Shown here: piece by piece, positions 15,400 through 54,642 of the stretch | Layout: every line of letters begins with the position of its first letter | Numbering within the stretch: position 1 is the stretch's first letter | Assembly: GCF_003918875.1 (NCBI RefSeq) | Contig: NW_025766012.1 | Span: 1 to 64,000 of the forward strand | Direction: 5' to 3' | DNA: 64,000 nucleotides | DNA from: Haliotis rubra | Lineage: Eukaryota | Made by a program: the position numbers and the translations under genes | The notes under the pieces: generated by a model | Seen by the model: the letters and a program-made list of their open reading frames with translations, nothing else | Databases searched by the model: none | Told to the model about the DNA's origin: nothing

Positions 15400-18300
15400 T
15401 AGTAAGTCAAGTGTCATTTGGGTCCACTGGACATTCTGGCAGAGGGACGAGTTTGGCCACAGGCCTCGTATAGTCCTTGTTCTTAACAGTTACTGTGGCT
15501 GTCCGAACATGACCATCTTGTCCTGGGTGAGTCTGGGTCACACGTCCACTGGCCACTGGGCACGGATTGACTGATTGTCAACAATCATGATGACATCTCC
15601 TTCCTGGATGTTGACTCTTGGTTTCTGCCATTTGCTCCGTAGCTGCATGTCGGGCAGATAGGATTTTATGAAGTGGGTCCAGAAGTGGTCCGCTAGGACC
15701 TTGATGTGCCTCCATCTCTTCCGGCTTAGGAGTTGGCTCCGCAGGATACACAACCTGAGGTAAAGATGTGTCATGCCGCCCCATTAGGAGAATGTTGGGT
15801 GTGATTGGGTCCAAATCTCTAGCATCTGATGACACGTAGGAAAGTGGCTTCGAGTTGAGAATGCCTTCGACTTCGCACAAGACAGTGCGCAAGGTTGCTT
15901 CGGTAACAGTCTGTTGACCAAGTGACACTCTGAGGCCATGTTTGACTGATCTGATCTCCCTCTCCCACACGCCTCCATGATGGGGTGCACTTGGAGGGTT
16001 GAACACAAATTCTACCTTTTGGTTGACAAGGTAGTGACGTAGTTCTGGTTCCATTTCAGACCATGCGTTCTGTAATTCTGATTTAGCACCTTTGAAGTTG
16101 GTGCCCTGGTCTGACAAGAGTTCATGAGGTTTACCCCTTCGGGATACAAAGCGGCGGAACGCCATGAGGAAAGCATCTGAATCCATAGACTCAAGGAGGT
16201 CTAGGTGCACTGCTCGGGTAGTCATACACTTAAAAATCACTCCCCATCGTTTCTCTAAACGACGTCCTATCTTCACCTGCATCGGGCCAAAACAGTCTAC
16301 TCCAGTCGAGTAAAAGGCTGGTTTGAAGAGTCGGAGACGGGCCGGTGGTAGGTCGGCCATCTTCTGAGTTGCAGGGTTTGAACGCCACTTCTGGCAGGTA
16401 GCACACTTACGTTGATGTCGTCGTATGGCCTCTCTGCCCCGGAGGACCCAGAATCTGCGTCGGATCTCGGCAAAGAGATGTTCCGGACCGTAATGCAAGA
16501 GTTTCTCGTCATGATCTCTGATAATCAGTTTGGTGATCTCGTGGGTTGGATCAAGAACTATGGGATTCTTAATATTCGAATCCAGGGATTCAGCTCGACG
16601 GAGTCTGCCGCCTACACGGATCAAGTCAAGTTCTGGATCGTATTCAGGATCAAGTTGAATCAGTCGACTATCGTGTGGTAATTGCTTACCAGACTTGAGG
16701 CAATCAAAGTCCTTTGAGAAGCACTGTTGTTGTACTTGGCAGTACAGATAGTTCTCAGTTTGCTCAACATGTTCAGGAGTCAGTGTCTTAGTTTCCTCTT
16801 TAGGGGCCGCCCCGTCAAGGGCTTCATTTACATCAGAGATGAATACTTCCCATGATTCATACTGTGTTGGGTCAGGCAAAGTGGGTGTCTGTGTCACAAT
16901 CGTTGACAACATGGCAGATTTCCTAAGTTCTGCTGGCTCGTCACTGCCTGTTGATGGAGATTCAGGCCATTCATCTGCTGACTGTCGGAGGAAGGCAGGT
17001 CCATTTCTCCATCTGGATTCTTCAACAAGGTCTTTGACACTCAGGCCTCGAGTGATATCATCAGCTGGGTTTTGCTGTGTGTTCACATACCTCCAGCAAT
17101 GTGTGTCGGTGAGGTTCTGAATTTCAGCTACTCTGGCTCCAACGAATACCTTGTATCTGCAAGATTCAGACTGCAACCATGTGAGCACAGTAGTAGAGTC
17201 ACTCCATAGATAAGTAGCTTGGATTGGTAGCTTTATTTCACACTGCAGCAGGTCTGCTAACTGAGCACCTGTCAGAGCTGCACACAGCTCTAGCCGTGGT
17301 ATGGTTAACTGTCTCTTCGGTGCAACCTTGGATCTGGACATCACGAAGCTGACATGAACCCTTCCATGTCGATCTTCTGAGCGCAAATAGGCGACTGATC
17401 CATATACCCTTTCGGATGCGTCACAGAAGATGTGTAATTGTGTAGTTGAATCGTCTGGATCAAACCCTTGAGAGGAATATAACACCTTGGTAGAGTAATC
17501 AGAGGGATGAGTCCCAGCTCACTTTCCCAAGCAAGCCACCTGTCACGAAGTTGCCCATTTTCAATGGAATCGTTCCAGTTTCTCTTTGACTTCCATAAGT
17601 CTTGTACTATGACCTTTAGCTTGTCCAATGAACGGTGACAGATACCCGATGGGGTCATATTGGCTTGCTAGCACTTTGTATACCATTCTCATGGTTAAAT
17701 TGGGGTAGTCTACATTTCTGTGTTTGTAGGTAAGTTCATCTGACTGACAGTCCCAGCGTAAGCCCAAAGTCGGTTCTCTAGGTTCACCCTGTCCAAAGTT
17801 GAGCCACAGGTCTGCGGCCTCGGACCTCGCTTCAGCAGGGGAGATCGGCGACAACCTCAGGAACATTACTTGCCCACTGTCTTATGTTGAATCCACCGTC
17901 TGTGAGCACATTTCGCATCTTGGTGACAAGCTGCTTTGCCTGAGTTTGGTTCTCGAAACTGTCCAAACAGTTATCTACATAGAAGGATTCACTCACTGAT
18001 TTGAACACTTCCTCATTGCCTGTCTGGTTTTCAGCTGCATGTTTCAACAGTGCATAGCTTGCGCAGCAGGGGGAGCAGGTAGTACCAAAGGGCAGAACTT
18101 GCCATTCATACACGTCTGGTGGACGATCGCATTGCATGTCTCGCCACAGGAAACGAAGCAAAGGGTCGATCAGGTGGAAGCAGTCTGATTTGGTGGAACA
18201 TAGCTTTGATGTCGGCAGTTACTGCCACTGCATGCTGTCGGAACCGGAGAAGCACTCCTAGAAGTGATGATCCAATGGTAGGGCCTGCTAACAAGTGATT

Positions 18301-19708
18301 GTTAAGATTTTTAGATTCAAACTCGAATGAACAATTGAACACAAGGCGATGTTTTCCGTTATGTTCAACCACATGGTGAGGGATGTACCAGGACTCTTTC
18401 GAATCTCTTATCTCGTCATCAGTGAGTTTTTCACAAATCCAGATTCATCAAGCTTCGAATAGCCTCATTGTGCGTTCTGGCCATATCAGAATTGTCCTTT
18501 AGTCGTCGTTCAGTACGCTTCAGAGTTGGGAGAACAGCTTCCACCCTGGCATTGAAACGGGTACCATCATGAGAGCGTAAGAGTGGGGTTGCGTAGTGAC
18601 TTACGCCATCCACCTCAATTCTTGTGGTCTGAGAATCTAGTATTTCCAGTGCCATCTTGTCCTGTTTGGAGCGAATGACCTGTTTACTCGTAAAGGGAAG
18701 AGTGTCCAATTGCCAAAGTCTCTCCACACAGTGAGATGGCGAGAGCTCAGCTGGTCGAGTCTGGTTCAGCAGACAAGTGTTCCTCTTCGTCTGCCCTAGC
18801 ATCATCGACGGACCTTGGACAGTCCAGCCAAGGTTGGTGTGGACACCACTAGGAGCATCTGAATTACCAAAGCATACTGGCTCTTTAGGCAAGATCAGCT
18901 TTGAGTTGTCGGATCCTATCAGAATACTTGGCACTGCTCCATTTATCTTTGGTAGAGGAAGGTTTTCCAGATGAGTCCAGTGCTGCTGCATATTCTCTAT
19001 GGGATATGTGTACTCTGACATGCATAGATTGTCTGCAGTGAAGGCATTGTCGATGTCAAACCTAGTGGCTGGCTGGTCTGCTGACGAAATCTGGAGTTTC
19101 ACAGATTGTCCACTACAGTGCACTGATTCTTGACTTATTGTTGTAAGGAGAATGGAATCCTGCTTCCCAGTGAGTTGAAGCTGCTGAGCCGTTGATTTCA
19201 ATATCATGGTTCGCATAGATCCATCATCAAGGATTGCGTATGTCGATACTGTGCTGCAGGGACCATGTAGGATTACTGGCACAATCTTTAACATAATGAG
19301 TGCAGGATGTGATGGTTGATCCATGTAGTAAACTTTGGATGATGTCTGCTGAAGGGCATCATGTAAGACTGTTAGATGCAACTGCTTACAAATGTGACAC
19401 GGCTTTCTCAAGGTGCATTCCCTTTCTTTGTGGTTTCGGCCACACCTGCTGCATCTGTTTTGACCCAGCCACTTGGAAATCTCACTTAATGACAGCTTCT
19501 TGAATTCAGGACACCCATTCAGGAAGTGGTCCCCACTAATACAATATGGGCAAAATGGCTTAGCTCTATTCACAGATGAAGTCTTGGCCTCCCTGGTCAG
19601 GAATAAAGCTGTTGGATTAGGTTGTCTATTGCCCAACCGAGGCGGTGGAGGCTTCCAATTCTCTCTTGGGGTCATGCGAACTGCATTTAAGCTCAGATCC
19701 ATTTCCAC
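15400..19708 (-). pseudogene. BEL gag-pol remainder: zinc knuckles, aspartic protease, RT, RNase H, integrase, DUF5641-like; several frameshifts
   Basis: CPYC..H..C and CSRC..H..C knuckles; ILDDGS protease; LPFG and YVDN RT; HIFCDAS/RLELCA/WSDS RNase H; GVDCFGP, SDQGTNF, GGVWER integrase; ORFs 18431-19708, 18106-18372, 17832-18161, 17561-17866, 15578-17485 and 15538-15774. Confidence 0.92.
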
Positions 19709-21821
19709 TTTCCACTGACTTCAGCATTCCTACTAAAGAACGTACGGAGAGAGCAAAACTGTCAAATGCATCGAGATCCCCGTACCTCAGTACAGGTGTT
19801 CCCATAAGGGCTCCTAATTCACTCTGAACAAGCTGACGTGGCTGTCCATATCTCTCCTTCAATGCTTGGAGTGTGGTTGAGAAGGGCCTCTCGTCGTGCA
19901 TGAATGCTGAAGCTAGTCTCTTAGGTGGACCTCCAAGCCTGTCCAGTAGAATTTGATATTTGTGTTGCTCGGTCAAGCCTGGATGGACGCTTACCAGATT
20001 ATCCAGGGCTATCTTCAGTAGGGCAAAATCCCTTTCCTTTCCACTATTGAAGTTAGGTAGGTTTGGCCTTGGAATGAATAGTTGAGACATGGTTGGTGTC
20101 ACTTGTGGGTTGACAGGGTGGAAGTCATAGGGAATTGGATTAACATTCACAGTGTCACTCAAGGTTGAATTAGAGTTTATCAAATTCTGCCTGTGGGTTT
20201 CATAATGTGGATCAGCACAGTTTGGTTGTGAGTAACATGGTTGATAAGGGTAGTTGTGTATTCTTGGTGATGCTTGGTCAATAAAGTTTGCAAACGATGT
20301 CTGGGCTGACATGGCTGCTGGTATGCTTGATGGCATCAAGACATGAGTGTCAATCGCATCAGGACCTGGTATCCCAGAGGACATCATGATGGGAGAGTGG
20401 ACCACACCGGGAGACATCATGACTGGTGTATGGACAGCACTGGAAGCTGGTACACTGGAGGATATCTGGACGGAAGAGTGAACAGCGCTGGGAGCTGGTA
20501 CACTGGAGGATGTCTGGACGGAAGTGTGGACAGCACTGGGAGCTGGTACACTGGAGGGTGTCTGGACGGAAGTGTGGACAGCACTGGGAGCTGGTACACT
20601 GGAGGATGTCTGGACGGAAGTGTGGACAGCGCTGGGAGCTGGTACACTGGAGGGTGTCTGGACGGAAGTGTGGACAGCGCTGGGAGCTGGTACACTGGAG
20701 GGTGTCTGGACGGAAGTGTGGACAGCACTGGGAGCTGGTACACTGGAGGGTGTCTGGACGGAAGTGTGGACAGCACTGGGAGCTGGTACACTGGAGGGTG
20801 TCTGGACGGAAGTGTGGACAGCACTGGGAGCTGGTACACTGGAGGGTGTCTGGATGGAAGTGTGGACAGCACTGGGAGCTGGTACACTGGAGGATGTCTG
20901 GACGGAAGTGTGGACAGCGCTGGGAGCTGGTACACTGGAGGGTGTCTGGACGGAAGTGTGGACAGCGCTGGGAGCTGGTACACTGGAGGGTGTCTGGACG
21001 GAAGTGTGGACAGCACTGGGAGCTGGTACACTGGAAGTGTCTGGACGGAAGTGTGGACAGCACTGGGAGCTAGTACACTGGAGGGTGTCTGGACGGAAGT
21101 GTGGACAGCACTGGGAGCTAGTACACTGGAGGATGTCTGGACGGAAGTGTGGACAGCACTGGGAGATGGAAGTGGTGCTCATCACAACAGGGGAATCTTC
21201 ATTTATCATACAGTCAATGAAACTTGCCTCTTTTAATCCGGCTTCCACTTCCCGAATTCTCCTTAAGTGGGTGATCTTGGTTCCTAGTCGCTCTCGTTCT
21301 CGTTGGGCTTCGCGTTCTATCTCATGAGCCCTCCTCTGCGTCTTTAGAATTTCCATTTCAGCCTCTTCCTGTGCCTTTCGTGCTATGTCGTCACATCTTG
21401 TTAATTCCTCCTGTGTGAGGATATCCTCCTCAAATCTTCTTTGCAATTCCTCTAGTTTGGATAATTTCTTTAGTTTTTCTAACCTTGCAGTTTGCTTGTC
21501 TGACAGCTGTGAGGTCACAGATCTTATTGATCCTTGGGAAGTTCTGCTACATACAGAGCTGTGGTCAGATATTGTGGATTTTGAATTTTCTGATTTCTTA
21601 TTTCTTCCACTTCTATTCACTGATTTCGATGACTCTACTGACTTTCTGCTTCTTTGAGTCACAGATTTGTTTGCTTCTGTTACAGCAACTTCCTTATCAA
21701 CATCCATAGGGGGGTTTGATAACACATAGTCCTCCCTGAGGTGCAAGGGTAGTTTACTTTCCCTCTGTGACTGTCTTACCGGTGCTATTGGATCTTGAGA
21801 GGTGTGCTCCTTTGATGCCAT
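19626..21821 (-). CDS. BEL gag N-terminal region (coiled coil, 16-aa repeat tract, DUF1759-like)
   Basis: Within the 749-aa ORF; LPNFNSG...KYQILLDRL...LKERYGQP is DUF1759-like. Likely start MASKEH. Confidence 0.85.
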   Translation of the reverse strand: MASKEHTSQDPIAPVRQSQRESKLPLHLREDYVLSNPPMDVDKEVAVTEANKSVTQRSRKSVESSKSVNRSGRNKKSENSKSTISDHSSVCSRTSQGSIRSVTSQLSDKQTARLEKLKKLSKLEELQRRFEEDILTQEELTRCDDIARKAQEEAEMEILKTQRRAHEIEREAQRERERLGTKITHLRRIREVEAGLKEASFIDCMINEDSPVVMSTTSISQCCPHFRPDILQCTSSQCCPHFRPDTLQCTSSQCCPHFRPDTSSVPAPSAVHTSVQTPSSVPAPSAVHTSVQTPSSVPAPSAVHTSVQTSSSVPAPSAVHTSIQTPSSVPAPSAVHTSVQTPSSVPAPSAVHTSVQTPSSVPAPSAVHTSVQTPSSVPAPSAVHTSVQTPSSVPAPSAVHTSVQTSSSVPAPSAVHTSVQTPSSVPAPSAVHTSVQTSSSVPAPSAVHSSVQISSSVPASSAVHTPVMMSPGVVHSPIMMSSGIPGPDAIDTHVLMPSSIPAAMSAQTSFANFIDQASPRIHNYPYQPCYSQPNCADPHYETHRQNLINSNSTLSDTVNVNPIPYDFHPVNPQVTPTMSQLFIPRPNLPNFNSGKERDFALLKIALDNLVSVHPGLTEQHKYQILLDRLGGPPKRLASAFMHDERPFSTTLQALKERYGQPRQLVQSELGALMGTPVLRYGDLDAFDSFALSVRSLVGMLKSVESGNGSELKCSSHDPKRELEASTASVGQ
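20427..21165. repeat. 48-bp coding minisatellite (~15 units) inside BEL gag
   Basis: Unit GTGTGGACAGCACTGGGAGCTGGTACACTGGAGGGTGTCTGGACGGAA; encodes SSVPAPSAVHTSVQTP on minus. Confidence 0.97.
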
Positions 21822-21833
21822 TTTCCACTTTAT

Positions 21834-21851
21834 ATCCGCCTCGCGGGACCA
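21834..21851 (-). promoter_or_regulatory. BEL primer-binding site (tRNA-Tyr-like)
   Basis: TGGTCCCGCGAGGCGGAT directly after the 5' LTR; resembles the complement of a tRNA-Tyr 3' end. Confidence 0.65.
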
Positions 21852-22113
21852 TGAAAACACGGTGCAGGTATGCACGGGACCAGGTTAGACTTGTTCTGTG
21901 GTTCAAAGGAAAACCAACAAGGTCAGGTACCATTAACTTTGTATTCTGGTGAAGGGTACAACAGAGGCATGCACCACATGGGTGCCGCCATATTGGATCC
22001 TAAAAGTTGGAATGATGCAAAATGTAGGTTGAAACGGAATTGGCATGCTAAAACGAAATAAGAATCATAGATAAAGTAAATGACCATTTTGGTCTTAAAA
22101 GGACTTTGTAACA
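21852..22113 (-). repeat. BEL 5' LTR
   Basis: TGAAAACACGG...TTTGTAACA; immediately followed on minus by the PBS. Confidence 0.95.
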
Positions 22114-24164: not shown

Positions 24165-24426
24165 GAAGAGAGAGAAGAGTATGTTTATTTGAGTCTCACT
24201 TTCTGTACATTGTCATAAAATGCAAGCTTTTTGTACAAAAGTTTACAGAAACTACCCGTTAGGTTATGAGGGACTATTTAAAACCAATAAAAACATTGTA
24301 GACCAACTTAACCAACAGTATCTACTCACGTAAAATCATATTCATATAAGTTAACACGCACAGGTATGCATACAAACAAACATACATACTAACAAACATA
24401 TAATCACAAATACAAAACAGCCATAC

Positions 24427-24735
24427 NNNNNNNNNNNNNNNNNNNNNNNNNNNNNNNNNNNNNNNNNNNNNNNNNNNNNNNNNNNNNNNNNNNNNNNNNN
24501 NNNNNNNNNNNNNNNNNNNNNNNNNNNNNNNNNNNNNNNNNNNNNNNNNNNNNNNNNNNNNNNNNNNNNNNNNNNNNNNNNNNNNNNNNNNNNNNNNNNN
24601 NNNNNNNNNNNNNNNNNNNNNNNNNNNNNNNNNNNNNNNNNNNNNNNNNNNNNNNNNNNNNNNNNNNNNNNNNNNNNNNNNNNNNNNNNNNNNNNNNNNN
24701 NNNNNNNNNNNNNNNNNNNNNNNNNNNNNNNNNNN
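24427..24735. other. Assembly gap (N run)
   Basis: Run of n. Confidence 1.
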
Positions 24736-25683
24736 AACTGCAAATTATGTGAAGGACATATTGTTTAATGTTCAGTGACATTCACTACTAAGAATAATAA
24801 CCAGCCGTTTGTCCAGGTGAAATAGCTCCTCAAGACTTCATTCCGATGAATACATAAGTTAGTTGTACTCGCATACAATGTCAGGGAAGATAACACATGT
24901 ACCAGAGGCAATAGATTAAAGGTCACATGCAACCAAAAAAATCAAAAATAATTAAAACACAATTATCACTTATTCATGACATATAATATACATTGCTGAT
25001 TATGAAAAAACATAAGCGTACAATCGCAAAACAAAAGTGCAATATTTTGTACTTGGGTTTACTTCCCTCGAAACGAAGCAGCCGGGATACCGAACCCAGT
25101 CAGAGTGGGTGGGTGCGCACTCAAGTGTAACGGCTGGTTCATTTGCATATTCCCCCACGGCTCATTGTGTGTGTGTATATAAAGAGATGTTGGGTTTTGT
25201 AAATACATGCTCGTTTTTTGTGTGCAGAACTTTTTGCTATCAACAGACATCATAACATGTCATGTGTACAAGTATCACACCTGCCTGTCCGTGTAATTAC
25301 ATAATGTGACAGGGACCGAACTCGGGCCATAAATCAATGCGTCTTGTTTATGGTGTATAGCCATGTATGTATTGCAATGTGATTTTAACCTCTGCAATGA
25401 TATTGTTTTCAATATGTTTTGAATATTGAGTGTACTTGGATATCCCTGATGTTGGGCGGGAGTCACGTAAGCCTTGCTCTTGGGAAATAACCACTATTGA
25501 GTGTCTCTCATCCTGTGTATCTCTGTCAAATATATTTGGATGGAAAAGCAATCTAGAGTAATGATAACCTTGGATTAATTGACCATTTGTGATGTAAAAC
25601 ACATTGAACTGACCATGCTGTCACCCTGTTGTGTACTATCTGACTGTTATCTTGTAGAGCCAAGAAGATATTGCATAATCGTG

Positions 25684-27009
25684 ATGGCCAAAGCTCAAAG
25701 GACTGTGGACCTGCATGTTCTCGGGGATAAAGGATCGGGCAAGTCTCTTTTCATACGGCAACTGGCTAATACAGTAGACTTCAGAAAGCTGAAAATTAGT
25801 AAGAAGTGTTACGTTGTGGAATTGGATCTGGAAAAGCTTATTGGAATTCCAGTTCTTCTAAACATCAGAGAATACAGAAGTTGGAAGTCCCATAGAGCTC
25901 TTATCGCCATTAAATACTGTAGGGCAGATGCATATTTACTGTTTTATGACATAGAGGAAACAACTATCTTCGAGAGAGCTCCAAGGATAACGCGGTGGCG
26001 TTATTTGAAGGGAGGAAAAACCTATCTATTGGGAAACAAAAGTGACAGGGTAGACAGAGACAACGTTCAGTTAATGGATCCTATCACTACCAAGCGACAG
26101 CCAGTGAAGCGCCACTTGATGGTATCAGCTAAAGATGGACATAACATACATAAAATGCTGGTTGATGTTCTTGGGGATGTCTTGGGCTCCAGTTTTGTAA
26201 TCAACAGTAGTCCACCATATTTAGACGTGCCCACTAGGAGTCGGGATCGCCGCTTGGAAGTTCAAACCTATCCAGTGGGAGTTCAAGCTGGTTTGTGTGT
26301 TATTGTTAACAACGACACGTTTGACAACGCAGCAGATCGACACGGCGCTGACAAGGACGTTATTATGATCGAAACAACATTTCGACCACTTGGATTTGAT
26401 ATGGGACAAGTGAAGAACAAAGACATTTCAACACTACTGGAAGACATGATCCATATATCTAAGCTGGATTATACATCGTACAGCATGTTTGTGTGTTTCA
26501 TCATGTCTCATGGGTCAGAGAACACCATTTGTGGAGTAGACGGCCTGACTATCGAAATTGAAGAGTTAACATCTCTGTTTTGTGCCCAGAATTGTCCCGG
26601 TCTAACCGGCAAACCCAAGCTGTTCATAATTCAGGCATGTCAGGGGTCTAAGGTTAATCCGTCGGCAACCGATCAGTGCGATGGAACAGGTCTTGCGGAC
26701 ACTCGAGAGAGGACTACTGTGCCAATGGTTGGAGACTTTTTAATTGCATATGCTACCAGTAAAGGATTCATTGCGTACCGCAATTCCAAAATGGGTTCTC
26801 CGTTTATACAGACACTGTGCGAGACAATTCGGGATTTTCCTGAAAATCACATTGTGGATATTCTGACCGTGGTAAACGAGAAGGTTGCCGCTATGAAATT
26901 TAAAGGGTCATTTAAACAGATGCCTATGTTCCAGTCGCAACTTAGAAAGCACCTGTACCTGAAGAGGCCGTCCGTGAGATCGGGCCATGATGACATTGTC
27001 GACCAATGA
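25684..27009 (+). CDS. Small-GTPase-like (Ras/Rab/Roc fold) domain fused to a caspase-8-like catalytic domain (p20+p10)
   Basis: Uninterrupted ORF (open from 25579; ATG MAKAQ at 25684 after a candidate acceptor TTGTAG at 25657). GTPase motifs: G1 GDKGSGKS, CRADAYLLFYD, G4 LLGNKSD, G5 VSAKDG. Caspase motifs: GLCVIVNN, RHGADKD, MSHG, GKPKLFIIQACQG, DFLIAYAT, AYRN..GSPFI, KQMP. Confidence 0.9.
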   Translation: MAKAQRTVDLHVLGDKGSGKSLFIRQLANTVDFRKLKISKKCYVVELDLEKLIGIPVLLNIREYRSWKSHRALIAIKYCRADAYLLFYDIEETTIFERAPRITRWRYLKGGKTYLLGNKSDRVDRDNVQLMDPITTKRQPVKRHLMVSAKDGHNIHKMLVDVLGDVLGSSFVINSSPPYLDVPTRSRDRRLEVQTYPVGVQAGLCVIVNNDTFDNAADRHGADKDVIMIETTFRPLGFDMGQVKNKDISTLLEDMIHISKLDYTSYSMFVCFIMSHGSENTICGVDGLTIEIEELTSLFCAQNCPGLTGKPKLFIIQACQGSKVNPSATDQCDGTGLADTRERTTVPMVGDFLIAYATSKGFIAYRNSKMGSPFIQTLCETIRDFPENHIVDILTVVNEKVAAMKFKGSFKQMPMFQSQLRKHLYLKRPSVRSGHDDIVDQ

Positions 27010-27169
27010 CTGACTCTGTGAATATATCGAAACTAGTTGTCCTGTTGTCCAGTTGGATACATGTTGACAAGGCAACAATCAACAATAATGGTAATCTGCG
27101 GATCTGCCAGTAGGAAAAGTAGGTGTTCAGTTGGATACGTGTTGTCAAGGCAACAGGCACCCGTACGTG

Positions 27170-27315
27170 ACTGTAGCCTGTGGATCTGTCAGTGACAAAC
27201 CTAGGTGTTCAGATGGCTGTAATCTCTGGACTGACAGTAGTTTGTGGATCTGTCAGTGACAAACCTAGGTGTTCAGATGGCTGTAATCTCTGGACTGACT
27301 GTAGTTTGTGGAACT
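27170..27315. repeat. 64-bp tandem duplication downstream of the caspase gene
   Basis: GGATCTGTCAGTGACAAACCTAGGTGTTCAGATGG... at 27182 and 27246. Confidence 0.85.
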
Positions 27316-28208
27316 GAGAATGGCAAAACTGTCAAGGCGACAGACAACCATTACGGACTGTTAAATGCTGATTGTTGATGTATTGATAATCTATAATTTT
27401 GTTGACATAGACTGATATTTGCATGTTAGTAGATTTGACGTACAGAAAAAGATTTATGCTAGACCAATGTAAATCATCGAACTGCTTTGAAGTGGATCCA
27501 TTCAAAGTGAATATTTGCATAATTCATCGGTTTTGGGCAGGTGCAAAGAGACTGGTTAGTTTATGATTAACAGATACACAAATTATTTACACCATGAAGA
27601 CAATGAACTTAAGCATTGTTATTTGTTGTAAACCAGTGGTATTCATAAAGCCAATGTGCAATGAGATGAACTGTATTTAAATGGAATAGATATTTTGACT
27701 GAGCACTACATATGCATATATTATTTCAGATGTGTATAGGCTTTGTGTCAAGCAACTACCGTAAATGATAAACGGAAATAATCTTTTTTAATATGTCTTG
27801 TCTGATTTGCCTGTTTGTAATCAATTCATAACACCTTAAACAAAAATTCAACAGTCAGTAAAAAGGTTTATATTTCCACAAGTCCATGATTTATTTACAG
27901 CCAACACTGGGTCAAGGGTCAAAAGTAGTTCCTATGCAAATTAGCCAACTCTCAATGAGGTCAGGTCTGATGTCTTGCCCCTGGCTTTCATTGGCTGAAG
28001 ATGTCCAACATGTTGAAGTTAGATGCATTAGGAAAGTGTGGAGTTTGTTCACTAGCTGTTTTTCTCCCAATCTGGCACGGTGGTTAAAAGGTCATAGAGG
28101 AGGATTTTGAATTGGCGAATTACAGGTTAGTTTCACTTGGTTTCATAAAAAAATGAAATTAAAATACAAAAATATGTCTAATTTTTGAAAGTTTAATTCA
28201 ATATTCAT

Positions 28209-28597
28209 CATAGCTGTATTTATGCATTTGGTGGAGGTATACTTTGACTTATAGTTAGAAGGTGGTGTCAATAATTTCACTTGCAATTGATTCAGATTTA
28301 TGTTTGAGTCCAAACATACTGTACATTTACTTTACTGGTTAGAATTATCATTTCCATGCTAATTAAGGCATACTATATTCAGTCCTTGGTTGGTCCTTGG
28401 TCATAGCTGTATTTATCCATTTGGTGGAGGTATACTTTGACTTATAGTTAGAAGTTGTTGGTGTCAATAATTTCACTTGCAATTTATTCAGATTTATGTT
28501 TGAGTCCAAACATACTGTACATTTACTTTACTGGTTAGAATTATCATTTCCATGCTAATTAAGGCATACTATATTCAGTCCTTGGCTGGTGCTTGGT
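28209..28597. repeat. ~193-bp tandem duplication
   Basis: CATAGCTGTATTTAT...CAGTCCTTGG at 28209 and 28402, near-identical. Confidence 0.9.
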
Positions 28598-28685
28598 GCA
28601 CGTTGATGTTTCACAACATGAGGCAAGTTTGATGCAAGTTGTCCCATAGATGGTAAGACACGCTGAGATGTGTCATGGTCGTTTG

Positions 28686-28854
28686 GGGGCGGTGGGGTAG
28701 TCTCATGGTTAAAGCGTCCACTCTTCACGCTGAAGTCCCGGGTTCCATTCCCCACATGGGTACAATGTGTGAAGAACATTTCTGGTGTCCCCCGCTGCGA
28801 TAGTGCTGAAATATTGCTAAAAGCGGCGTAAAACCATACCCACACACTCACTCA
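28686..28854 (+). mobile_element. tRNA-derived SINE (family 1)
   Basis: A box and B box (GGTTCCATTCC), (CACT)n tail, TSD-like TCATGGTCGTTT/TCATGGTTATTT; homologous to 49031-49200. Confidence 0.85.
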
Positions 28855-33386: not shown

Positions 33387-34793
33387 CTATGCTTCGAGGC
33401 GCAGCGGCACATCGTCTAGTTGTTTGAGAAAAGGATCCAGGTCTTGGTCTCTCATGGTGGCTAGACTTGCCATCATCTGGACTTGTCTGGCAGCAGTTGG
33501 GGGCAGGTCGCTCTCTTTTTCTGCTCGGGCCACCATCACCAAGAACTTATATTGGTACAGTCTCATCTTGTGTAGTTCGCTCAACTCAACTTTGGCGTCT
33601 CCAGTGCCAGGAAGTCCTAGGAAATTATACTTGTCAAGAAGGTCCTGTCTACTGGATGTCGGCATGCAACCTCTGAGCTCTTCCTCAAACTTCATAGCTG
33701 CGAACTCCCAGCTCAACAGCTTCTTGTCTGCTGTCATGGCCGTCCATCCCTTGGGTGGCCAGAGGATGGAGGTCCCACCAAGGCGAAGAGGGCTTCCCGC
33801 CTGGTCCATTCCCTCGGGCTGGGGAAACTGGGGCATCGCTCCTGTTTTAAAAGGTTGTGTGCTTGCTTCATGGTACTTCGATGCGCTGAGAGGTCAGGTC
33901 TGTGAGGCACTGTTTCTTGGAGCTTGTAGCAGGCTTCTCTCCTTGTGAGCTACGCTTTGGCGGATGGATGGTCGATGGCCAAGAGAATGCACGTTTCACC
34001 TCGGACATTGGGACTTCAAAGCCTAGTTAGTCGGTTACAACCTTCGAGAATCCTAGGCAGGTGGGCAAGATCCACTGGTGTTGACGAGTTTGATGGCAGC
34101 TCAGGAGTTTCTCTTCCCACTAATTGGAAAAGGTTTCTTGCAAGGACTTCTCCAATGATTGTGTTCTTTAAGATGTTGGGAGATAGATCGAGTTGAACCC
34201 AGCTGAAAAAAGACCACCTGTAATCTTGAAATCGAGAGTTATATCCTCTTTTCCTACCTTGACAGCATTCAGATGATAATTTGGGTCTTGAATCCTTGGT
34301 GTTTCCGGATCATATGCCTCTAAAGGTTGGAGCTGGTGAGGTCATCATCAAGAGTTTGTTCTGCTGGTGGAATGTCCAATGATAATACCTCTTCAGGAGA
34401 AGTCAAGCTCCACCCAGCCTCCCATTCCTTCCTGGTTCTGTGTATGAGTGAGTCGGTATTGCCATCTTCCAACCACTGGAGCACAAGCTCCCTCGCTCTG
34501 ATGGCTGGTTCATTCGATGCCGGTGTGTAGTCAAGAGCCCGAGCATAGTCCTTAGGGCATAGCGAAAACCAGAAACCGTTTGCTTCAGTTAGCAAAGACC
34601 CATCAATAGCCTCGTCTTGGTGCTCAGCTTGTATGTGCATCTTTAAGTCGCAAACTCGACGAAATGTTCTCCCTTCATCGCACCACACGCAGAGGACCCG
34701 TAGCGCACCATGATCATCACGTGCTACATGGTTCTTCAACTCCCTTTTGGAGGTACAGACAGCAGGACACATCCAGCAGGTGAATTTCCCCAT
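33387..34793 (-). CDS. Gypsy extra ORF3 with two C2H2-type zinc fingers (disrupted in this assembly)
   Basis: MGKFTCWMC..H....H and CVWC...H....H in ORF 34320-34895; further coding-like segment 33387-33836 ending ~40 bp before the PPT; acceptor-like TTTCAG 2 nt before the ATG. Confidence 0.6.
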
Positions 34794-35361
34794 TGCTGAA
34801 ATAATATTGTAAATATTAGCACTGATACGACCATCATATATGGTATTAATGGAGACGAGAGCCCTGTCAAGTATGTTCAGTTTTTTTTTCTTCACTCATA
34901 AGTTCCTAATGCTATCCCTGACAAAAAAAATGGATGTACCATGCAGAAGCTCCAAGATATAAAACCGGTATCCATTCTTATTTCCAAATAAGTATAACCC
35001 TGGTAGGTGCCTCTCACATATTTGGGTATAAAAGTACAAGTGTATATGTGTCCCAGTGAGTTGCACTCGCCATTTTGCCATAATGTCCAAAAGTTAGACA
35101 ACAGAAAAGTTGCTTCTCCAATTCAGTCAAGGATAACATCATCATCTCGGACAGGAACATGTGAACATTAGATATTCAGCACATCATAGGGCTGACAAAC
35201 ATCTTCCAGATATGTTAACAACCAGATCATCCAGGGAGCATCGGGTAGGGGGACTTGAGAATTTCATCAGGCGGAAGTAATGTTTAGTGTTAATTATCAT
35301 GTTTATTGTTGAACAAATATTTACAGCGAACAGTCATCAGAAAATCATGGAAATCATGGGC

Positions 35362-38300
35362 CTAGTCTCTTGTTTTGCATCTGCTGATCCATCTGGGCAC
35401 ATTCCGTCCCAAGTATGGAAGTAGTCTGTCAATGTGGATTGCCTTAGCCATCTGATGTTGCGACTTCTTCACCAAGTAAGTGAGATCATCTAACTTTCTC
35501 AGTATGACATATGGACCTTTCCAGGGCGAGGTAAGTTTGCTGCAGACGCCAACCTTCCTGACTGGATTTAGAAGCCAAACAGGTTGCCCGGTGGTGAGAA
35601 CACGCTTCTTTGCTCTAAGGTCATAGTGACGCTTCTGGTAAGTTGTTCTCTTCTTCAGACATTGTCTGCTTATGTTGTGGATGTTGACCAGCTTTTCCTT
35701 CAGATGACTGATGTACGTGTCAGGAGTTTTATTTTCCTGGTCCTTATCTTTAGGACGTATTATCAGAGCTTGCACTGGGAGGGTAATCTCTGCCTAGGAC
35801 CATCATGTTTGGTGTTTTACCTGTGGTTGCATGCTCTGAAGCTCGATATGCCATCAGGATCTGAGGTAGGAATTCATCCCAAGACCGTTGGTCTGATTCT
35901 GCATACATGGTCAGCATCTGTTTTAAGGTGCGGTTAAACCGCTCAACACAACCATTAGACTGTGGATGCAGACTTGTTGTCCTTGTTTTATCAATGTGGA
36001 ACAGGTCACACATATCCTTGAATACAGCAGACTCGAAGTTTGAGCCTTGATCAGAGTGAAGCTGCAGTGGTACACCAAAACGACAAATAAAGGTGTCAAT
36101 GAAGGCCTTAGCAACTGTCTTTGCCTCCTGATCAGGTAATGCAACAGCTTCTACCCACTTGGTAAACTGGTCTACCATCACCAGAATGTATCTGTTACCA
36201 TTCTTAGACTTGGGGAGGGGCCCAACAATGTCAATAGCTACCCGTTCCATTGGTTCACCAACCTGATAGGATCCCAGTGGAGACCTCTGGAGGGTAGGAG
36301 ACTTTCTAGCAGAGCATCGATCACACAGAGAACAGTATGTCGATATGTCATCTTTCATGGCTGGCCAATAAAAAAGATTGTCTGACTTTGCCCAAAGTCT
36401 TTTCAGAACCCAAGTGACCAGAGGAAGGAACATCATGACAGTATCTCAAGACGTCATCCTTCTTTATCTCAGGTACTATGAGCTGCAGAACTTCCTGGTC
36501 CTCGTCTTCACTTATCCATCTACGATACAGTAGCCCGATGTGAGCCTCAAGTCTTTCCCACTGTCTCCACAGAGTTTTCAGGGAAGAGGTAAGATGGGAA
36601 ATGGTATCCCACTTGGGTCTTGACAAGCCGTCTTCTTTAGCGGTAAGAAGAATGCCAATGTTTTTGTCCTCTAACTGCTCTTGTCTTAGTTGTGCTATTT
36701 CCCATCCATCGAGCAGACGAAGTCCAGATTTGGTGAGGCAACCATTCTCAGAAGATTTTTGTCTTGTGATAGCTCGCGAAGCTAAAACATTACTGCTTAA
36801 TTCTGGAGAACCATTTTCATCAACAAATTTGATGCTACCTTGTGCAGACTCTGCTTCATCGTCACTAAGACTCGGATTAGAACTCTGCCTTACACATGTG
36901 GCACATGGAGATCTCAAAAGTGCATCAGCATTCCCATGTTGTCTGCCTGGGCGATGAGTGACCAACAGGTTATAATTCCCCAGCTCTTGAAGCCATCTTG
37001 CTACCTGTCCATTTGGATTCTTGAGGTTCTTCATCCATGAAACTGCAGCATTGTCAGTCCTCAGCAGCACTTCTTGTCCATACAGGTAAGTGTGGAAGTG
37101 TTTTAGTGCTGTAACAACTGCAAGAAGTTCTTTCCGCGTGATGCAGTAAGACCTCTCATGGCTGTTCATTGCTTTGCTCATATAGGCAATCACTTTTTCT
37201 GACCCATCTTGTTCCTGAGATAGTACTGCCCCCATTGCATTGTCACTGGCATCTGTGTCCAGTATGAACTTCTTGCCTAGAATGGGATATGACAGAATGG
37301 GAGATGAAATCAAAGCATGCTTCAGGGTTTCAAAAGCTCTTTGACACTCATCAGTCCACTTGAACTGTGCTTTCTTGTCAGTCAACCTGTGAAGTGGTCT
37401 CGCAATGTCAGCAAATCCTTTGACAAACCTCCGATAATAGGAACACAGTCCCAGGAAGCTCCTCACCTCTTTGACACGAGTTGGTGCAGGCCAGTCTTTT
37501 ACTGCTTCAGTCTTTTTGGGATCAGTTTCCACTCCCTGAGCAGACACAATATGGCCCAGAAACTTTATTCTTTTCTGGAAGAAAGAACACTTAGAGGGTT
37601 TTAGTTTCAACCCTGCTTGTAACAGCCTCTGGAATACATGTTCTAACTTCTGAAGGCACTGGAATACACCATTTCCAGGAACAATTACATCATCCATGTA
37701 AATTAAGCATTCAACCCACTGCATGCCAACAAAGACATTTTCCATCAATCTTTGAAATGTTGATGGAGCATTTACGAGACCAAAAGGCATAACTGTAAAC
37801 TGGTACAGACCAATGCTGGTGGCAAATGCAGTTTTGTGTTTGTCACTTTCCTCAACACCCAGCTGCCAGAAGCCAGAGTTAAGATCCATGCAATTGAACC
37901 ATGATGAGCCAGCGAGAGCATCAAGACATTCATCTATCCTCGGTAAAGGATATGCATCCTTCAACGTGACTTCATTCAAACGCCTTTAGTCAATGCAAAA
38001 TCTCCAGCTATCGTCAGACTTCTTCACTAAGACTATAGGGCTTGCCCAAGGACTGTTTGAAGGTTCGATGACTCCACGGTCCAACATCTTGTAGATTTCA
38101 ACTTTTTCAGCTTCCCGTTTGCCAAATGGCAGACGCCTCGGAGGCTGTTTGATAGGCCTTGCATTGCCTGTGTCAATATGGTGTTCAACTAGATTGGTCC
38201 GTCCCAGGTCCTCAGGTGACTTTGAAAAGACATCTTGGTACTTGGTAAGTAACCCTGATAAGGCATCTGATTCATTGGGGGATAGGTGTATAGTACTTCT

Positions 38301-39128
38301 TTCCCACAATTCCTTTAAGTGCTCAGGAAGGGTAGGTGAATGCTGTTGTTGAATTTCATCAACAGATTGGGTAACAGAATTATCTAAGCTAGATTCCCTT
38401 GTCTCAGGCAGCACAGCTTCACATATTCCTAAGTTCATTTTAGGGTGTACGATGACCTCCTTCTCTCCCATGTTAACTACATTAACAGCAATAGTAGAAG
38501 CCTTTGTATCAATTATTCCTCTGGTTAAACATATCCCTTGTTTTTCATATAGGTCCTCAGAGGCTTCGATGATACCATTTTTAGCCATGCCAAGACCATG
38601 AGGAAGAACAACAGGAACCAATGACCCGGAGTGAGGTGGAAGCGTGACTGCCTCTTTAACTTGTACTCTACAAGACAGTATAGCCTCCCCTCCAGCACTA
38701 CAGACCAATAGTGAACCTTGGTTTGTCTTAAGCATCATGTTTTTGTAGTCAATGCTACTAATGTATTTGGTAAGAAAATCTTGACCAATGAGCCCTTCGG
38801 GAGTTATGTCACACACCACAACCTCATGAAGATAGGTAACATCCCCGAAGTCAAGAGGAACAAGGGCTGTCCCAGAAACATTCAGTGTAGAGCCATTGAC
38901 ACCTTGGATATCCGATGTCCATGGTACAAGTTCTGGCTTACATGTAAGGGTATCATACTTTCCTTTAGACAGAAGAGTCACTGTGGAACCAGAATCAACC
39001 AGAAATCTCACCTCCATGGTGTCTACTATTCCAGTAACATAGACACCATTGTCACATTTGTGGATAGATTCGCCAACCTGTCCTATTCTAGGAATGTCTC
39101 TGTTACTGAGCCTTTGTTCCTCTGTCAA
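35362..39128 (-). pseudogene. Gypsy pol (protease, RT, RNase H, integrase with GPY), broken by ~3 disruptions
   Basis: FLVDSGS; YPLPRID, MPFGL, YMDD; LDTDAS, KELLA, RTDN; HHCC, AIDIVGP, HSDQG, VERFNRT; WKGPY. Confidence 0.95.
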
Positions 39129-39139
39129 GATTCGGCCCT

Positions 39140-40522
39140 CTACCTTGACAGATTGAAGTTTCCCTGTCCCTTAGAGTTTTCCTGCCTGTGACTCTGTTGT
39201 GACATCTGAGTCCCACAATTAGAGTTTGGGGGCATCTGAGGCATCGTTTGCGTCCTCGGCATTTGGGCATACGTTATCTGAGATTGCTTGAAGCTCTGGC
39301 ACATCTGATTATAGATGGGACAGTTCCTGAGGAGATGCCCATTTTCGTTGCAGACAAGGCAACGTCGTGCAGGCCTCTGAGACTGAGCAGTGTAATATCT
39401 ACCCTCAGGTATAGGCACAGTGCGCCGTTCTCTATTGGACTCATACCCTTTGTTTTCAAGCCTAGATATGCTCGAGGCAATGTCCTTGAGGTACTTCTCA
39501 AGACCTTTATCATCTGGTAATTCAGCAGATGGTGGACCAACATAACGTACAGATGGCCTCTTTCTGTCCTTAGAATCATCCATTATTGCCTCATAGCGTT
39601 CAATAACATCAACAGCTTCAGAGACAGAGCGACAGTCACGATCCATGCATCTACATTTCATTTCTAGAGGTATTGCTTTATACAGCTGGTTTAGGGCTAG
39701 GGCTTCCTGAGCTCTAGCATCAAGGTTAGAATAGGCTCGCTGTGCCATCTGCCTCAGATCATCACCTAAAGTAGCAATTGTTTCATTGGGTCGTCTTTGC
39801 CTCATCTCTAACCGTGAGAGCCAACGACTTTGCTGACGTGAACTGCCAAATCTATCACCAATTTTCCTGACAAGGTAAGTGTAGTTACGCCTCTCATCTG
39901 GAGACAGACCTATATAAAAGGTACGTGCTGAAGCTCTTAAACTAGCTGCAAGGGCCAAAACCTTGTCCTGGTCATCCCATCTGCCAAGCTCAGCACATGC
40001 CTCAAAGTGACACAGGTATTCTTCCCAATCACCATGACCATCATATGAGTCAGGATGGAAATTAAGACCAGCCTTGGGTTTAAAATGTGTGTTTGCCTTA
40101 GTAATAGGCCTTAGCCGTGTTTGGTTGGGTCTCGGGAAGGGTAAGTAATCATCAGTACCCTCAGCATGGGGTAACTCAGATGAGCCTGGCATGAGTCCCT
40201 CTACCGGAGGAGCAAACATTCGCCCATGGCTGTGAACATAGGTAGCACCATCAGCTATTGTACAATTATTCCTAGGACCACTCCTCGAGAAGAATTGGGA
40301 CACCCATAAAGTACATCACCCTCGGAGCGACTATGTTTGTACCAATGGATGTGGAGTTCCCGGCCTCATTGGTAGCCTATCATCAGAAACAGATCTAATA
40401 CTTGAGCCACAACTGACCCTGGAGATTTGAGACATCTGATCATCATCTGGTTCATCATCAGGAGAATTCCTTGCAACATCAATAGTTTTGAATAAGACAT
40501 CTGGGTCTGGTGACTCTGCCAT
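39140..40522 (-). CDS. Gypsy gag (one disruption near 40310-40335)
   Basis: YDGHGDWEEYLCHFE capsid motif and CLVCNENGHLLRNC zinc knuckle; ORFs 40331-40522 and 39140-40303. Confidence 0.88.
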
Positions 40523-52969: not shown

Positions 52970-54642
52970 ATGGAGATTCTTTCAGCGATCTGTTTAGTAA
53001 TGGCCGTTGTGGGCGGGTGTGTGTCCGAGCTGGTCATATACCCTGCACCTCCGACCATGGAGGCATCAGATAAGTATGAGGTTTTGGTTGGTCTTGGGGA
53101 TCCATTATTGAGTACCTTCACTTACCAGACGACCTCGAACCACAGACATGCCGAGATTCCCTATGTCCATCCCAACCGCTCTGTGTCCTGGTCGTCTTTT
53201 GCGTTCAGTGGTGGTCCAGTAGTGGTTGAGGTCAGAACGCTGACCGACTTCAGTCAGTGTCTGGTTCGTCCAGCAAGTTACGGATACGCTTGTAGTAGGG
53301 TCGGGATCAATACGGCAAGGTTTACAGTGACTCGGAATTCTAGCATGATGTCTGTAGAGTTTGATAATGACTACGGCAGTTGGAAGTCCGAAATAGTCGA
53401 CAAGTTGCTGATATTTGCTGATCCCCTGAAGAGAGATGTTCCCTCTAACAGTGACCCTTCCGTTTTGTTCTTTGATGTCGGTGTGCATTATCTTGGAAGT
53501 CAAGTCAGTTTAAACTCCAGCATTAAAGAAGTTTACATCAGTGCCGGAGCTTTTGTCGATGGAGGGTTCATCACCGAGGACAACACAACGGTCAAGATCC
53601 ATGGAAGAGGAATCTGTTCAGGCCGAAAGTACAAATTCCATGACAAACGATTTCAATGGTCGTTGATCAACACTGCACGAGGCACCAATCACACAATTGA
53701 AGGTATCACGTTAAGCGACCCCCAGCAGTTTTTCATATTCGCTTAAAGTCCAAACAACATAATCAAACAGGTTAAGATGGTGGGTGCCTGGCCATACAAT
53801 AGCGACGGCATTGAGATGGGAGTAGGAGGCGTAGTGGAGGACGTCTTTATCATGGCCAATGATGACTCACTCAAGGTAATGTAACACTTTGACATCTAAC
53901 AACTCTGTGTGTTTTGCATAATTATGGTTACAGATTAATTATCAGTTATCAATCCGTCAGTTGTGTCGAAGTATAATCCAGGATAATCAGCATAATGTTG
54001 GTAAATGTGTATGGACATGAAAATGAATTCCCGCGCAGAAGAAACCCTTAAACTCCAGGTATGTAGATGATATTACGTACCACGGTAATGGTCAGATATC
54101 CCATTACGTTTCAGGTGTACAACAATGATATGACGATACAGAGAGTGGTCATCTGGCAAATGCAAAATGGTGCCGTTTTCCAAACAGGCTGGTGGGCTGA
54201 ACGTGACCTTCACAGAGTGAAAGTCACCAATATTGACGTGATTTACATGGACTGGTGTACTTTCCGCGGCCCGGAATGTGACATGTTAAGTAGAAATGAT
54301 GCAGTGTTCAATCTGGCTGGAAACGTCAAAGTCATCAACATGAGTGATGTAGTATTTCAAAACATTCGTCTGGAAGGTTTGTGTCCTCGTTTTGTTTTCT
54401 GGACAATGCCGGCAGGGACACGTGGTACTTCCTCCAACGTCCGGTTTATAGATGTCTCAGTTGGATCACAGCCAAGTACTGGCCAACTCAGGAATGAAAT
54501 AGCAGGCAATAAACCCAACGGATATGTGACTGATTGGCTATTTTCTAATTTGTCTGTAAGCGGACGCTGTATTTCAACCTCCGGCGCAGGGAGATTCATA
54601 ATTGATAATTCTACCACATCCAATATTACATTTTCGTGTTAG
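52970..54642 (+). CDS. GH49-like glycoside hydrolase copy C; exons 52970-53875 and 54115-54642; in-frame TAA at 53744-53746 (pseudogene or error)
   Basis: Signal peptide MEILSAICLVMAVVGGCVS; SWSSFAF, SVEFD, IFADP, GRGICSG, NSDG, NDDSLK|GTAATG...TTTCAG|VYNND..WQMQNG..GWW. Confidence 0.85.

Follow-up and report, generated by a model that had tools for sequence, protein, structure and literature searches.

A small abalone gene family in which a Ras/Rab-like G domain is joined to a caspase

The window examined here is a stretch of 64,000 nucleotides from Haliotis rubra (positions 1 to 64,000 of contig NW_025766012.1, forward strand, in RefSeq assembly GCF_003918875.1, which totals 1.378 Gb in 2855 contigs), and our subject is a gene within it that encodes a small-GTPase-like (G) domain and a caspase in a single polypeptide. 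The first-pass annotation of the window had described one clean open reading frame (ORF) joining a Ras/Rab-like domain to a complete caspase, and this was confirmed by the ORF listing, which gave a single open frame at 25579-27009 on the + strand, and by Pfam matches of the predicted protein to Peptidase_C14 (PF00656; E-value 5.4e-50, residues 203-425, profile positions 2-233 of 233) and to Ras (PF00071; 31.7 bits against a cutoff of 21.6, residues 12-164). Both matches are far beyond chance, and the fusion is a real, intact abalone gene. The ATG at 25684 is the first that matches the starts of the homologues, giving an N-terminus of MAKAQ. Coordinates below are window positions and residues are numbered from this ATG. 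The gene and its parts are as follows.

25684..27009, + strand: G-domain-caspase coding sequence (CDS), 441 residues plus stop in one coding exon (ORF; Pfam Ras and Peptidase_C14; full-length homologues at 61-64% identity)
25684..26193, + strand: Ras/Rab-like G domain, residues 1-170 (Pfam Ras; family profile against PDB; AlphaFold2 model; Foldseek)
25723..25746, + strand: G1 or P-loop, GDKGSGKS, with G19, K20 and S21 invariant (alignment of 11 family members)
25870..25881, + strand: G3 equivalent, E63-Y-R-S66, aligned to D57-x-x-G60 of Ras/Rab (pairwise and profile alignments)
26035..26046, + strand: G4, NKSD (guanine specificity), N118 invariant (family alignment)
26125..26133, + strand: G5, SAK (alignments)
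26194..26283, + strand: interdomain linker, residues 171-200, predicted to be disordered, with Asp at YLD181 and SRD188 (predicted local distance difference test score, pLDDT, <50 at 175-192; homologue alignment)
26284..26967, + strand: caspase catalytic domain, residues 201-428, p20 extending to D333 and followed by p10 (Peptidase_C14 and caspase-3 match)
26338..26340, + strand: R219, first S1-pocket arginine (DRHG), invariant (family alignment)
26506..26514, + strand: catalytic His motif S275-H276-G277, invariant (family alignment)
26632..26646, + strand: active-site pentapeptide QACQG, with Q317 and C319 invariant (family alignment)
26680..26682, + strand: D333 in an intersubunit linker predicted to be disordered, invariant in 11 of 11 members (family alignment; pLDDT <50 at 320-345)
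26779..26781, + strand: R366, second S1-pocket arginine (AYRN), invariant (family alignment)

The motif starts given on first pass (GDKGSGKS 25723, NKSD 26035, SAK 26125, SHG 26506 and QACQG 26632) were all correct, as were both S1 arginines and the linker TDQCDG that contains D333.

The G domain could be placed in the Ras superfamily by several routes. A profile of the family's G domains matched Rab5 and RabX3 structures in the PDB with E-values of 1e-17 to 1e-23 (1e-17 for Rab5), and an AlphaFold2 model of residues 1-175 had Ras topology (pLDDT 72, predicted template modeling score 0.73). Foldseek searches with the model returned Ran, Rab, Rho and Gem, each at probability 1.0 and with template modeling scores of 0.6-0.67, and so indicated no clear subfamily. 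The superfamily hallmarks G1 GxxxxGK[ST], G4 NKxD and G5 SAK are all present in the window copy. The G3 region is unusual: the canonical DxxG is replaced by ExxS in the window copy and by ExxG in its relatives, E63 being invariant in the 11 members and aligning with Ras Asp57, while position 66, which aligns with Gly60, is Gly in 10 of 11 members and Ser only in the window copy. A reading of G3 as an RGK-like motif in another register was ruled out, as both pairwise and profile alignments put E63 on Asp57 and S66 on Gly60. At the position of the catalytic Gln61 the window copy has W67 and the family as a whole W, V, N, D, P or F, with Gln in none of the 11 members, and no switch-I Thr (Thr35) is conserved in subfamilies A or B (defined below), where K37 aligns to that position.

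Since G1, G4, G5 and the acidic G3 residue are conserved, guanine-nucleotide binding is probably retained, and since both a Gln61 equivalent and the switch-I Thr are missing, intrinsic GTP hydrolysis is probably weak. Small GTPases that lack the catalytic Gln include Rnd/RhoE, RhoH, the RGK proteins and Rap, and a residue other than Gln at position 61 implies hydrolysis that is slow or dependent on a GTPase-activating protein. The fusion resembles these in its canonical P-loop, NKxD, SAK and non-Gln residue at position 61, but differs from them in having ExxG/ExxS rather than DxxG at G3, no switch-I Thr, no C-terminal lipid box and a caspase fused to it. The first-pass suggestion of a nucleotide-gated caspase did not fare well in its classical form: the gamma-phosphate sensors are Thr35 and Gly60, the former and Gln61 are missing here, and the window copy has lost Gly60 as well, so a loaded-spring switch appears doubtful, above all in the window copy. 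ROCO proteins (DAPK1, LRRK2) likewise carry a Ras-like G domain in cis with a death-related enzyme, and one of the subfamilies (C) passes the Pfam Roc cutoff; in contrast to ROCO proteins, however, the fusion has no match to COR, its output is a protease rather than a kinase, and the window copy scores only 12 bits against Roc (cutoff 27).

The caspase half has the features of an active, Asp-specific enzyme. The catalytic dyad H276/C319 is invariant in the 11 family members, as are R219, Q317 and R366, which align to the S1 pocket of caspase-3; in caspase-1 numbering the S1-pocket residues are Arg179, Gln283 and Arg341. We regard the product as an Asp-specific caspase that probably acts in immune cell death. 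The invariant D333 is a likely autoprocessing site; the residues around it read xETD in subfamilies B, C and D and DQCD in the window copy. In the interdomain linker, YLD181 and SRD188 are possible sites for removal of the prodomain, although the Asp residues of this linker are not conserved across subfamilies.

On first pass QACQG had been taken as typical of caspase-8/10, and this typing was not supported. The closest solved structures are human caspase-3 (E-value 5.7e-42, residues 200-426) and caspase-7, there is no Pfam match to DED (PF01335) in the fusion protein although DED caspases in the same search show it, and QACQG does not define the family, subfamily B having QSCRG or QACRG instead. 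The whole-domain match to caspases-3/-7 (C14A), with the His/Cys dyad, the Arg-Gln-Arg S1 pocket and an Asp in the intersubunit linker, is close, but the fusion has a 170-residue G domain and a 30-residue linker where those enzymes have a short prodomain (~28 residues), and QACQG where they have QACRG. With caspases-8/-10 it has in common a long N-terminal regulatory region, QACQG and a comparable level of similarity (148 bits between lemur caspase-10 and the fusion protein). In a tree of 58 caspase domains, to which vertebrate caspase-3/6/7 did not belong, the four fusion subfamilies fell in one cluster with short mollusc "caspase-3-like" proteins (support of 94 in the Shimodaira-Hasegawa-like approximate likelihood ratio test); this cluster neighbours that of the DED caspases, but the family lies outside the DED clade itself. 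That the fusion arose only once was neither shown nor rejected on this tree (approximately unbiased test, P 0.15).

The fusion belongs to a small abalone-only family with four subfamilies, A to D, found so far only in Haliotis or in a Haliotis-like sample. All members carry the NCBI name "caspase-3-like", and three of the H. rubra ORFs (P0002, P0029 and P0195) are exact translations of NCBI proteins so named. Subfamily A in H. rubra consists of the window gene, an intact paralogue on the contig we label C1831 (64% identical) and two broken copies on contig C400, with orthologues in H. cracherodii and H. rufescens. The gene adjoining the H. rufescens orthologue on its upstream side (L030:1-247) specifies a protein with a TIR domain (TIR_2; there is also a faint SH3_2 match), and the locus may be an immune-gene neighbourhood. 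Subfamily B, ~30% identical to A, includes genes in H. rubra (C1890), H. rufescens and H. cracherodii and an H. rubra copy, P0031 (C891:1578259-1579125), whose caspase is retained but whose G domain is reduced to its last ~25 residues, a secondary prodomain loss. Subfamily C is present in H. cracherodii, H. rufescens, H. asinina and H. rubra; it scores higher than the window copy against Pfam (Ras 54 bits; Roc 32.6 bits, cutoff 27), and its N-terminus, MGGKPS, matches the myristoylation consensus. Subfamily D, in which G4 and G5 are degenerate, is represented by two near-identical genes in one ENA assembly whose repeats match those of H. rubra at ~85%. The fusion is thus not a one-off of the window, recurring as it does in four Haliotis species.

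Wider searches were consistent with this restricted distribution. When the family profile was run against 1.84 billion representative proteins, the G domain was found only in family members among the best 150 matches, and a search with the G domain alone returned Haliotis proteins only. No stand-alone parent of the G domain emerged from a genome search, which gave family members and one ordinary Rab, or from the atlas, which gave generic Ras/Rho clusters. That Rab, the closest free-standing GTPase at 30% identity, is a single-exon canonical gene (C374:31873-32388; WDTAGQE, NKVD, SAK and a C-terminal CCS). Among caspase-only relatives, P0009 of H. asinina has a 130-residue N-terminus; we considered whether this region (P0009:1-135) is a decayed G domain and rejected it, as hhalign detected no similarity to the family G domain (probability 0.1%). 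Its orthologue in H. rubra is a single-exon caspase-only gene at two loci with identical scores (C1735:662689-663396 and C1391:37130-37837), which are probably haplotigs or very recent duplicates.

The first-pass statement that no caspase with a small-GTPase prodomain had been described held up, as we found no Ras- or GTPase-caspase in the searchable literature, whose coverage does not extend to subscription journals. Mollusc caspases are known with CARD, DED, DD, DSRM, FN3 and PB1 prodomains (domain list in PMC10967218). The abalone fusion resembles such lineage-specific shuffling, exemplified by oyster CgCas1-2D, in that a sensing module is placed before CASc, but none of the listed combinations has a Ras or other GTPase domain.

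Gene structures differed among the subfamilies. In subfamily C the QACQG codons are interrupted, precisely between Q and A, by a phase-0 GT..AG intron, which measures 3.6 kb in H. rubra and 10.3 kb in H. cracherodii; splicing it out of the H. rubra gene yields exactly the NCBI protein. A Logan contig for subfamily C (P0189) was considered as a transcript and rejected, since it extends into the intron and is thus genomic. Many other H. rubra caspase matches stop near the same residue, which suggests that this intron is ancestral among caspases. It is missing from subfamilies A, B and D, whose CDS is a single exon in all species examined, a pattern that would fit an old retrocopy or precise intron loss. 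The evidence bearing on how the H. rubra A copies arose, and on the region upstream of the CDS, includes three further features.

24736..28815, no strand: segmental-duplication unit common to C1831 and the two C400 pseudogene copies (blastn identity 80-94% across the flanks)
25640..25657, + strand: CTGAC, a pyrimidine tract and TAG upstream of the ATG, near-invariant in the two H. rubra copies, H. cracherodii and H. rufescens
25615..25617, + strand: alternative in-frame upstream ATG in a conserved ACCATG, which would add 23 residues (ORF and upstream alignment)

The H. rubra A copies also match in their flanks, over ~1 kb before and 1.8 kb after the coding sequence (24736 to at least 28815), indicating that the recent expansion of A was by segmental duplication. 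The proposal of retroposition or recent shuffling therefore stood only in part: intron loss in A, B and D agrees with it, but the recent copies are segmental duplicates, and although the parental intron is absent, homology is not confined to the mRNA as in a processed retrogene. Two of these copies are intact and two dead, the latter (C400:115176-116465 and C400:200396-201702) lying ~85 kb apart and carrying frameshifts and several stops. How far the duplicated segment extends on its 5' side is obscured by a run of N at 24404-24735 (an assembly gap or masked sequence). The gene is immediately preceded, at 24856-25435, by a repeat of very high copy number (word depth 1e5-1e6 in two genomic-looking sequencing runs), which the C1831 and C400 duplicates carry as well. 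The CTGAC-pyrimidine-TAG element, an acceptor-like motif 27 nt upstream of the ATG, may represent the branch point and 3' splice site of an intron in the 5' untranslated region (UTR), so that the description of the gene as intronless applies to its coding sequence only. The frame from the ATG at 25615 is open in the window, H. cracherodii and H. rufescens and closed by a TAG in C1831.

We estimated selection from the ratio of nonsynonymous (dN) to synonymous (dS) divergence by Nei-Gojobori counting with custom scripts, with the following results.

Subfamily C, H. rubra and H. cracherodii: dS 0.63, dN/dS 0.12 (G domain 0.15, caspase 0.05)
Subfamily B, H. rubra and H. rufescens: dS 1.17, dN/dS 0.23
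Subfamily A, H. rubra and H. cracherodii: dS about 0.5, dN/dS 0.40-0.51
Window copy and C1831: dS 0.20, dN/dS 1.15 (G domain 1.89, caspase 0.83)

In subfamily C the fusion is maintained by strong purifying selection in both domains, and the G-domain-caspase is therefore a working protein. The young A paralogues gave a very different picture. When differences between the window copy and C1831 were polarised with an outgroup, the window branch had 83.5 nonsynonymous and 12.5 synonymous changes (ratio ~1.9, P 0.01), and over codons 1-200 the ratio of the proportions of nonsynonymous and synonymous differences (pN/pS) was 1.88 (P 0.013), with pN far above the divergence of the upstream flank. Within the G domain, differences at codon positions 1/2/3 numbered 38/38/19, zero-fold sites had diverged by 0.229 and four-fold sites by 0.037 (Fisher P 6e-4), and nonsynonymous divergence was about 0.20-0.21 compared with 0.11 for synonymous. 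The non-coding flanks had diverged by 4.5% over 944 nt upstream and by 11.3% downstream. On each of the two paralogue branches, switch-I/interswitch residues 29-48 had the highest or a near-highest density of replacements (0.30 and 0.20 per residue). Because drift alone cannot lift replacement divergence above every neutral yardstick, this indicates positive, diversifying selection on the window copy, centred on the G domain.

Other features of the window include repeats and mobile elements. Tandem repeats lie downstream of the stop codon at 27168-27316 (64 bp, 2.3 copies) and 28208-28597 (196 bp, 2 copies). ORFs of a BEL/Pao-type retrotransposon occupy 15578-21875 on the - strand (Peptidase_A17, an integrase zinc-binding domain and DUF1759), and those of a Gypsy-type retrotransposon 36348-40303, also on the - strand (aspartyl protease, reverse transcriptase, RNase H and integrase H2C2), with an adjoining element at 33387-34810. 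A 258-residue ORF at 52970-53746 on the + strand had a weak match to the Ig-like Glyco_hydro_49N (E-value 6e-6).

In the account that we prefer, to which we would give somewhat less than an even chance, the G domain is a GTP-binding, hydrolysis-poor prodomain for sensing or recruitment, a partner of which clusters or releases the caspase, with autoprocessing at D333. The usual caspase prodomain, which is short or a DED or CARD, would in this abalone family have been replaced by a divergent Rab-like G domain acting as the sensing or recruitment module. A host or pathogen partner would bind its fast-evolving surface and so concentrate or release the caspase half, activation presumably being by proximity or by release; the caspase would then cleave itself at the invariant linker D333 and go on to cut substrates after Asp, leading to cell death or another immune output. 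The adaptive divergence of A, the dead and truncated copies and the neighbouring TIR-domain gene point to an antagonistic and probably immune setting, and birth and death in the family is evident from the two frameshifted C400 copies and the copy with a truncated G domain. A precedent for a mollusc caspase with a novel sensor prodomain is an oyster protein with two DSRM domains that binds pathogen-associated molecular patterns, according to PMC12122919. What the first-pass annotation had observed was confirmed and its interpretation partly supported, its idea of a sensor or switch gaining indirect support from the positive selection centred on the G domain.

Several points weigh against this sensing account. 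The immune role is drawn only from the evolutionary pattern, and the dN/dS values come from counting methods and one paralogue pair. Neutral divergence between the window copy and C1831 is uneven, at 0.04 in the 5' part and 0.22 in the 3' part, so a separate gene-conversion history of the 5' part may apply. Two changes are found in the window copy alone, G66S and H263Y (the latter replacing a His that is nearly invariant), so its G domain may be wholly unresponsive to nucleotide. A predicted G-domain homodimer complex scored 0.01, which is evidence neither way. RNA support was not found among the sequencing runs, none of which is on record as RNA and which look genomic or miss the gene (X5 and X6 resemble genomic reads from a related individual, and the coverage of X1 and X2 is confined to flanking repeats), and this is not a sign of silence.

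Two other accounts, each of which we consider unlikely though credible, keep the fusion as a functional protein. One is that the G domain is an integrated decoy, a Rab-like domain that mimics a host GTPase, such that attack by a pathogen effector (modification, cleavage or binding) frees or clusters the caspase. Positive selection is strongest in the G domain, with high replacement density in the switch-I/interswitch segment, a bait could tolerate loss of the catalytic Gln and the switch-I Thr, and the birth and death in the family is lineage-specific. Guarding of small GTPases and integrated decoys are moreover known elsewhere, as in the guarding of RhoA by pyrin and the integrated decoys of plant nucleotide-binding leucine-rich repeat receptors (NLRs). 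However, there is no close stand-alone GTPase to mimic, the best in the genome being the ordinary Rab at 30% identity, the conservation of the G domain in subfamily C is unlike that expected of bait in an arms race, and no effector is known. The bolder claim, that the family represents an animal integrated decoy, that is, a one-polypeptide sensor for effector-triggered immunity without an NLR or adaptor, shaped by an abalone arms race, we hold to be more doubtful still.

The other possibility is an ordinary effector caspase with an inert or inhibitory pseudo-GTPase prodomain, which an upstream caspase would remove at a linker Asp to leave a caspase-3/7-like enzyme. The catalytic domain is indeed nearest to caspase-3 and caspase-7 among solved structures, the xETD preceding D333 in subfamilies B, C and D resembles the IETD site of caspase-3, the interdomain linker is disordered and contains Asp, and both the loss of G4 and G5 in subfamily D and G66S in the window copy would be in keeping with such a prodomain. 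Yet the P-loop GKS, E63, N118, NKxD and SAK have been conserved over deep divergence, the G-domain dN/dS of 0.15 in subfamily C reflects selection on nucleotide-binding features rather than on a mere spacer, and the interdomain Asp residues vary among subfamilies.

It is quite improbable that the window copy is simply a young duplicate drifting towards a pseudogene, still open by luck, with other members carrying the function. In favour of this reading, two of its sisters on C400 are already dead, its dN/dS is at or above 1 with unique changes at G66 and H263, RNA support is lacking among runs of which none is on record as RNA, and the gene sits between retrotransposons on a small, repeat-rich contig of 76 kb. 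Drift, however, cannot lift nonsynonymous divergence (0.20) above the synonymous (0.11), four-fold (0.04-0.14) and flank (0.05-0.11) values. The chance of the copy having remained stop-free was ~0.03, its indels are all in frame, and only 2 of 45 family-invariant columns have changed where ~6 would be expected (P 0.06).

Finally, an annotation artefact, with upstream coding exons (e.g., DEDs) missed or the G domain spliced out, is barely credible. It would agree with a frame that continues upstream as far as 25579, with the acceptor-like motif before the ATG and with the assembly gap 950 nt upstream, but all A homologues begin MA(K/E)G, the upstream frame of C1831 is closed by a TAG, the myristoylation-type MGGKPS of subfamily C must be N-terminal, and no splice-like break separates the domains in four subfamilies and several species.

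Caspase activation normally runs by way of death-fold prodomains (CARD, DED) and adaptor platforms. In the abalone family that place is taken by a G domain with nucleotide-binding features, constrained in subfamily C and diversifying adaptively in young duplicates, and the family offers a small natural model in which to study the coupling of a death protease to a new input module. It also extends the domain shuffling already known from mollusc caspases by a new architecture, with a caspase prodomain class not reported in the searchable literature, its sequences being public but unrecognised as fusions. Diseases of abalone include herpesvirus ganglioneuritis and withering syndrome, the latter due to a rickettsia-like bacterium, and the members of this family are candidate immune genes in farmed and endangered abalone that have been hidden in annotation as "caspase-3-like".

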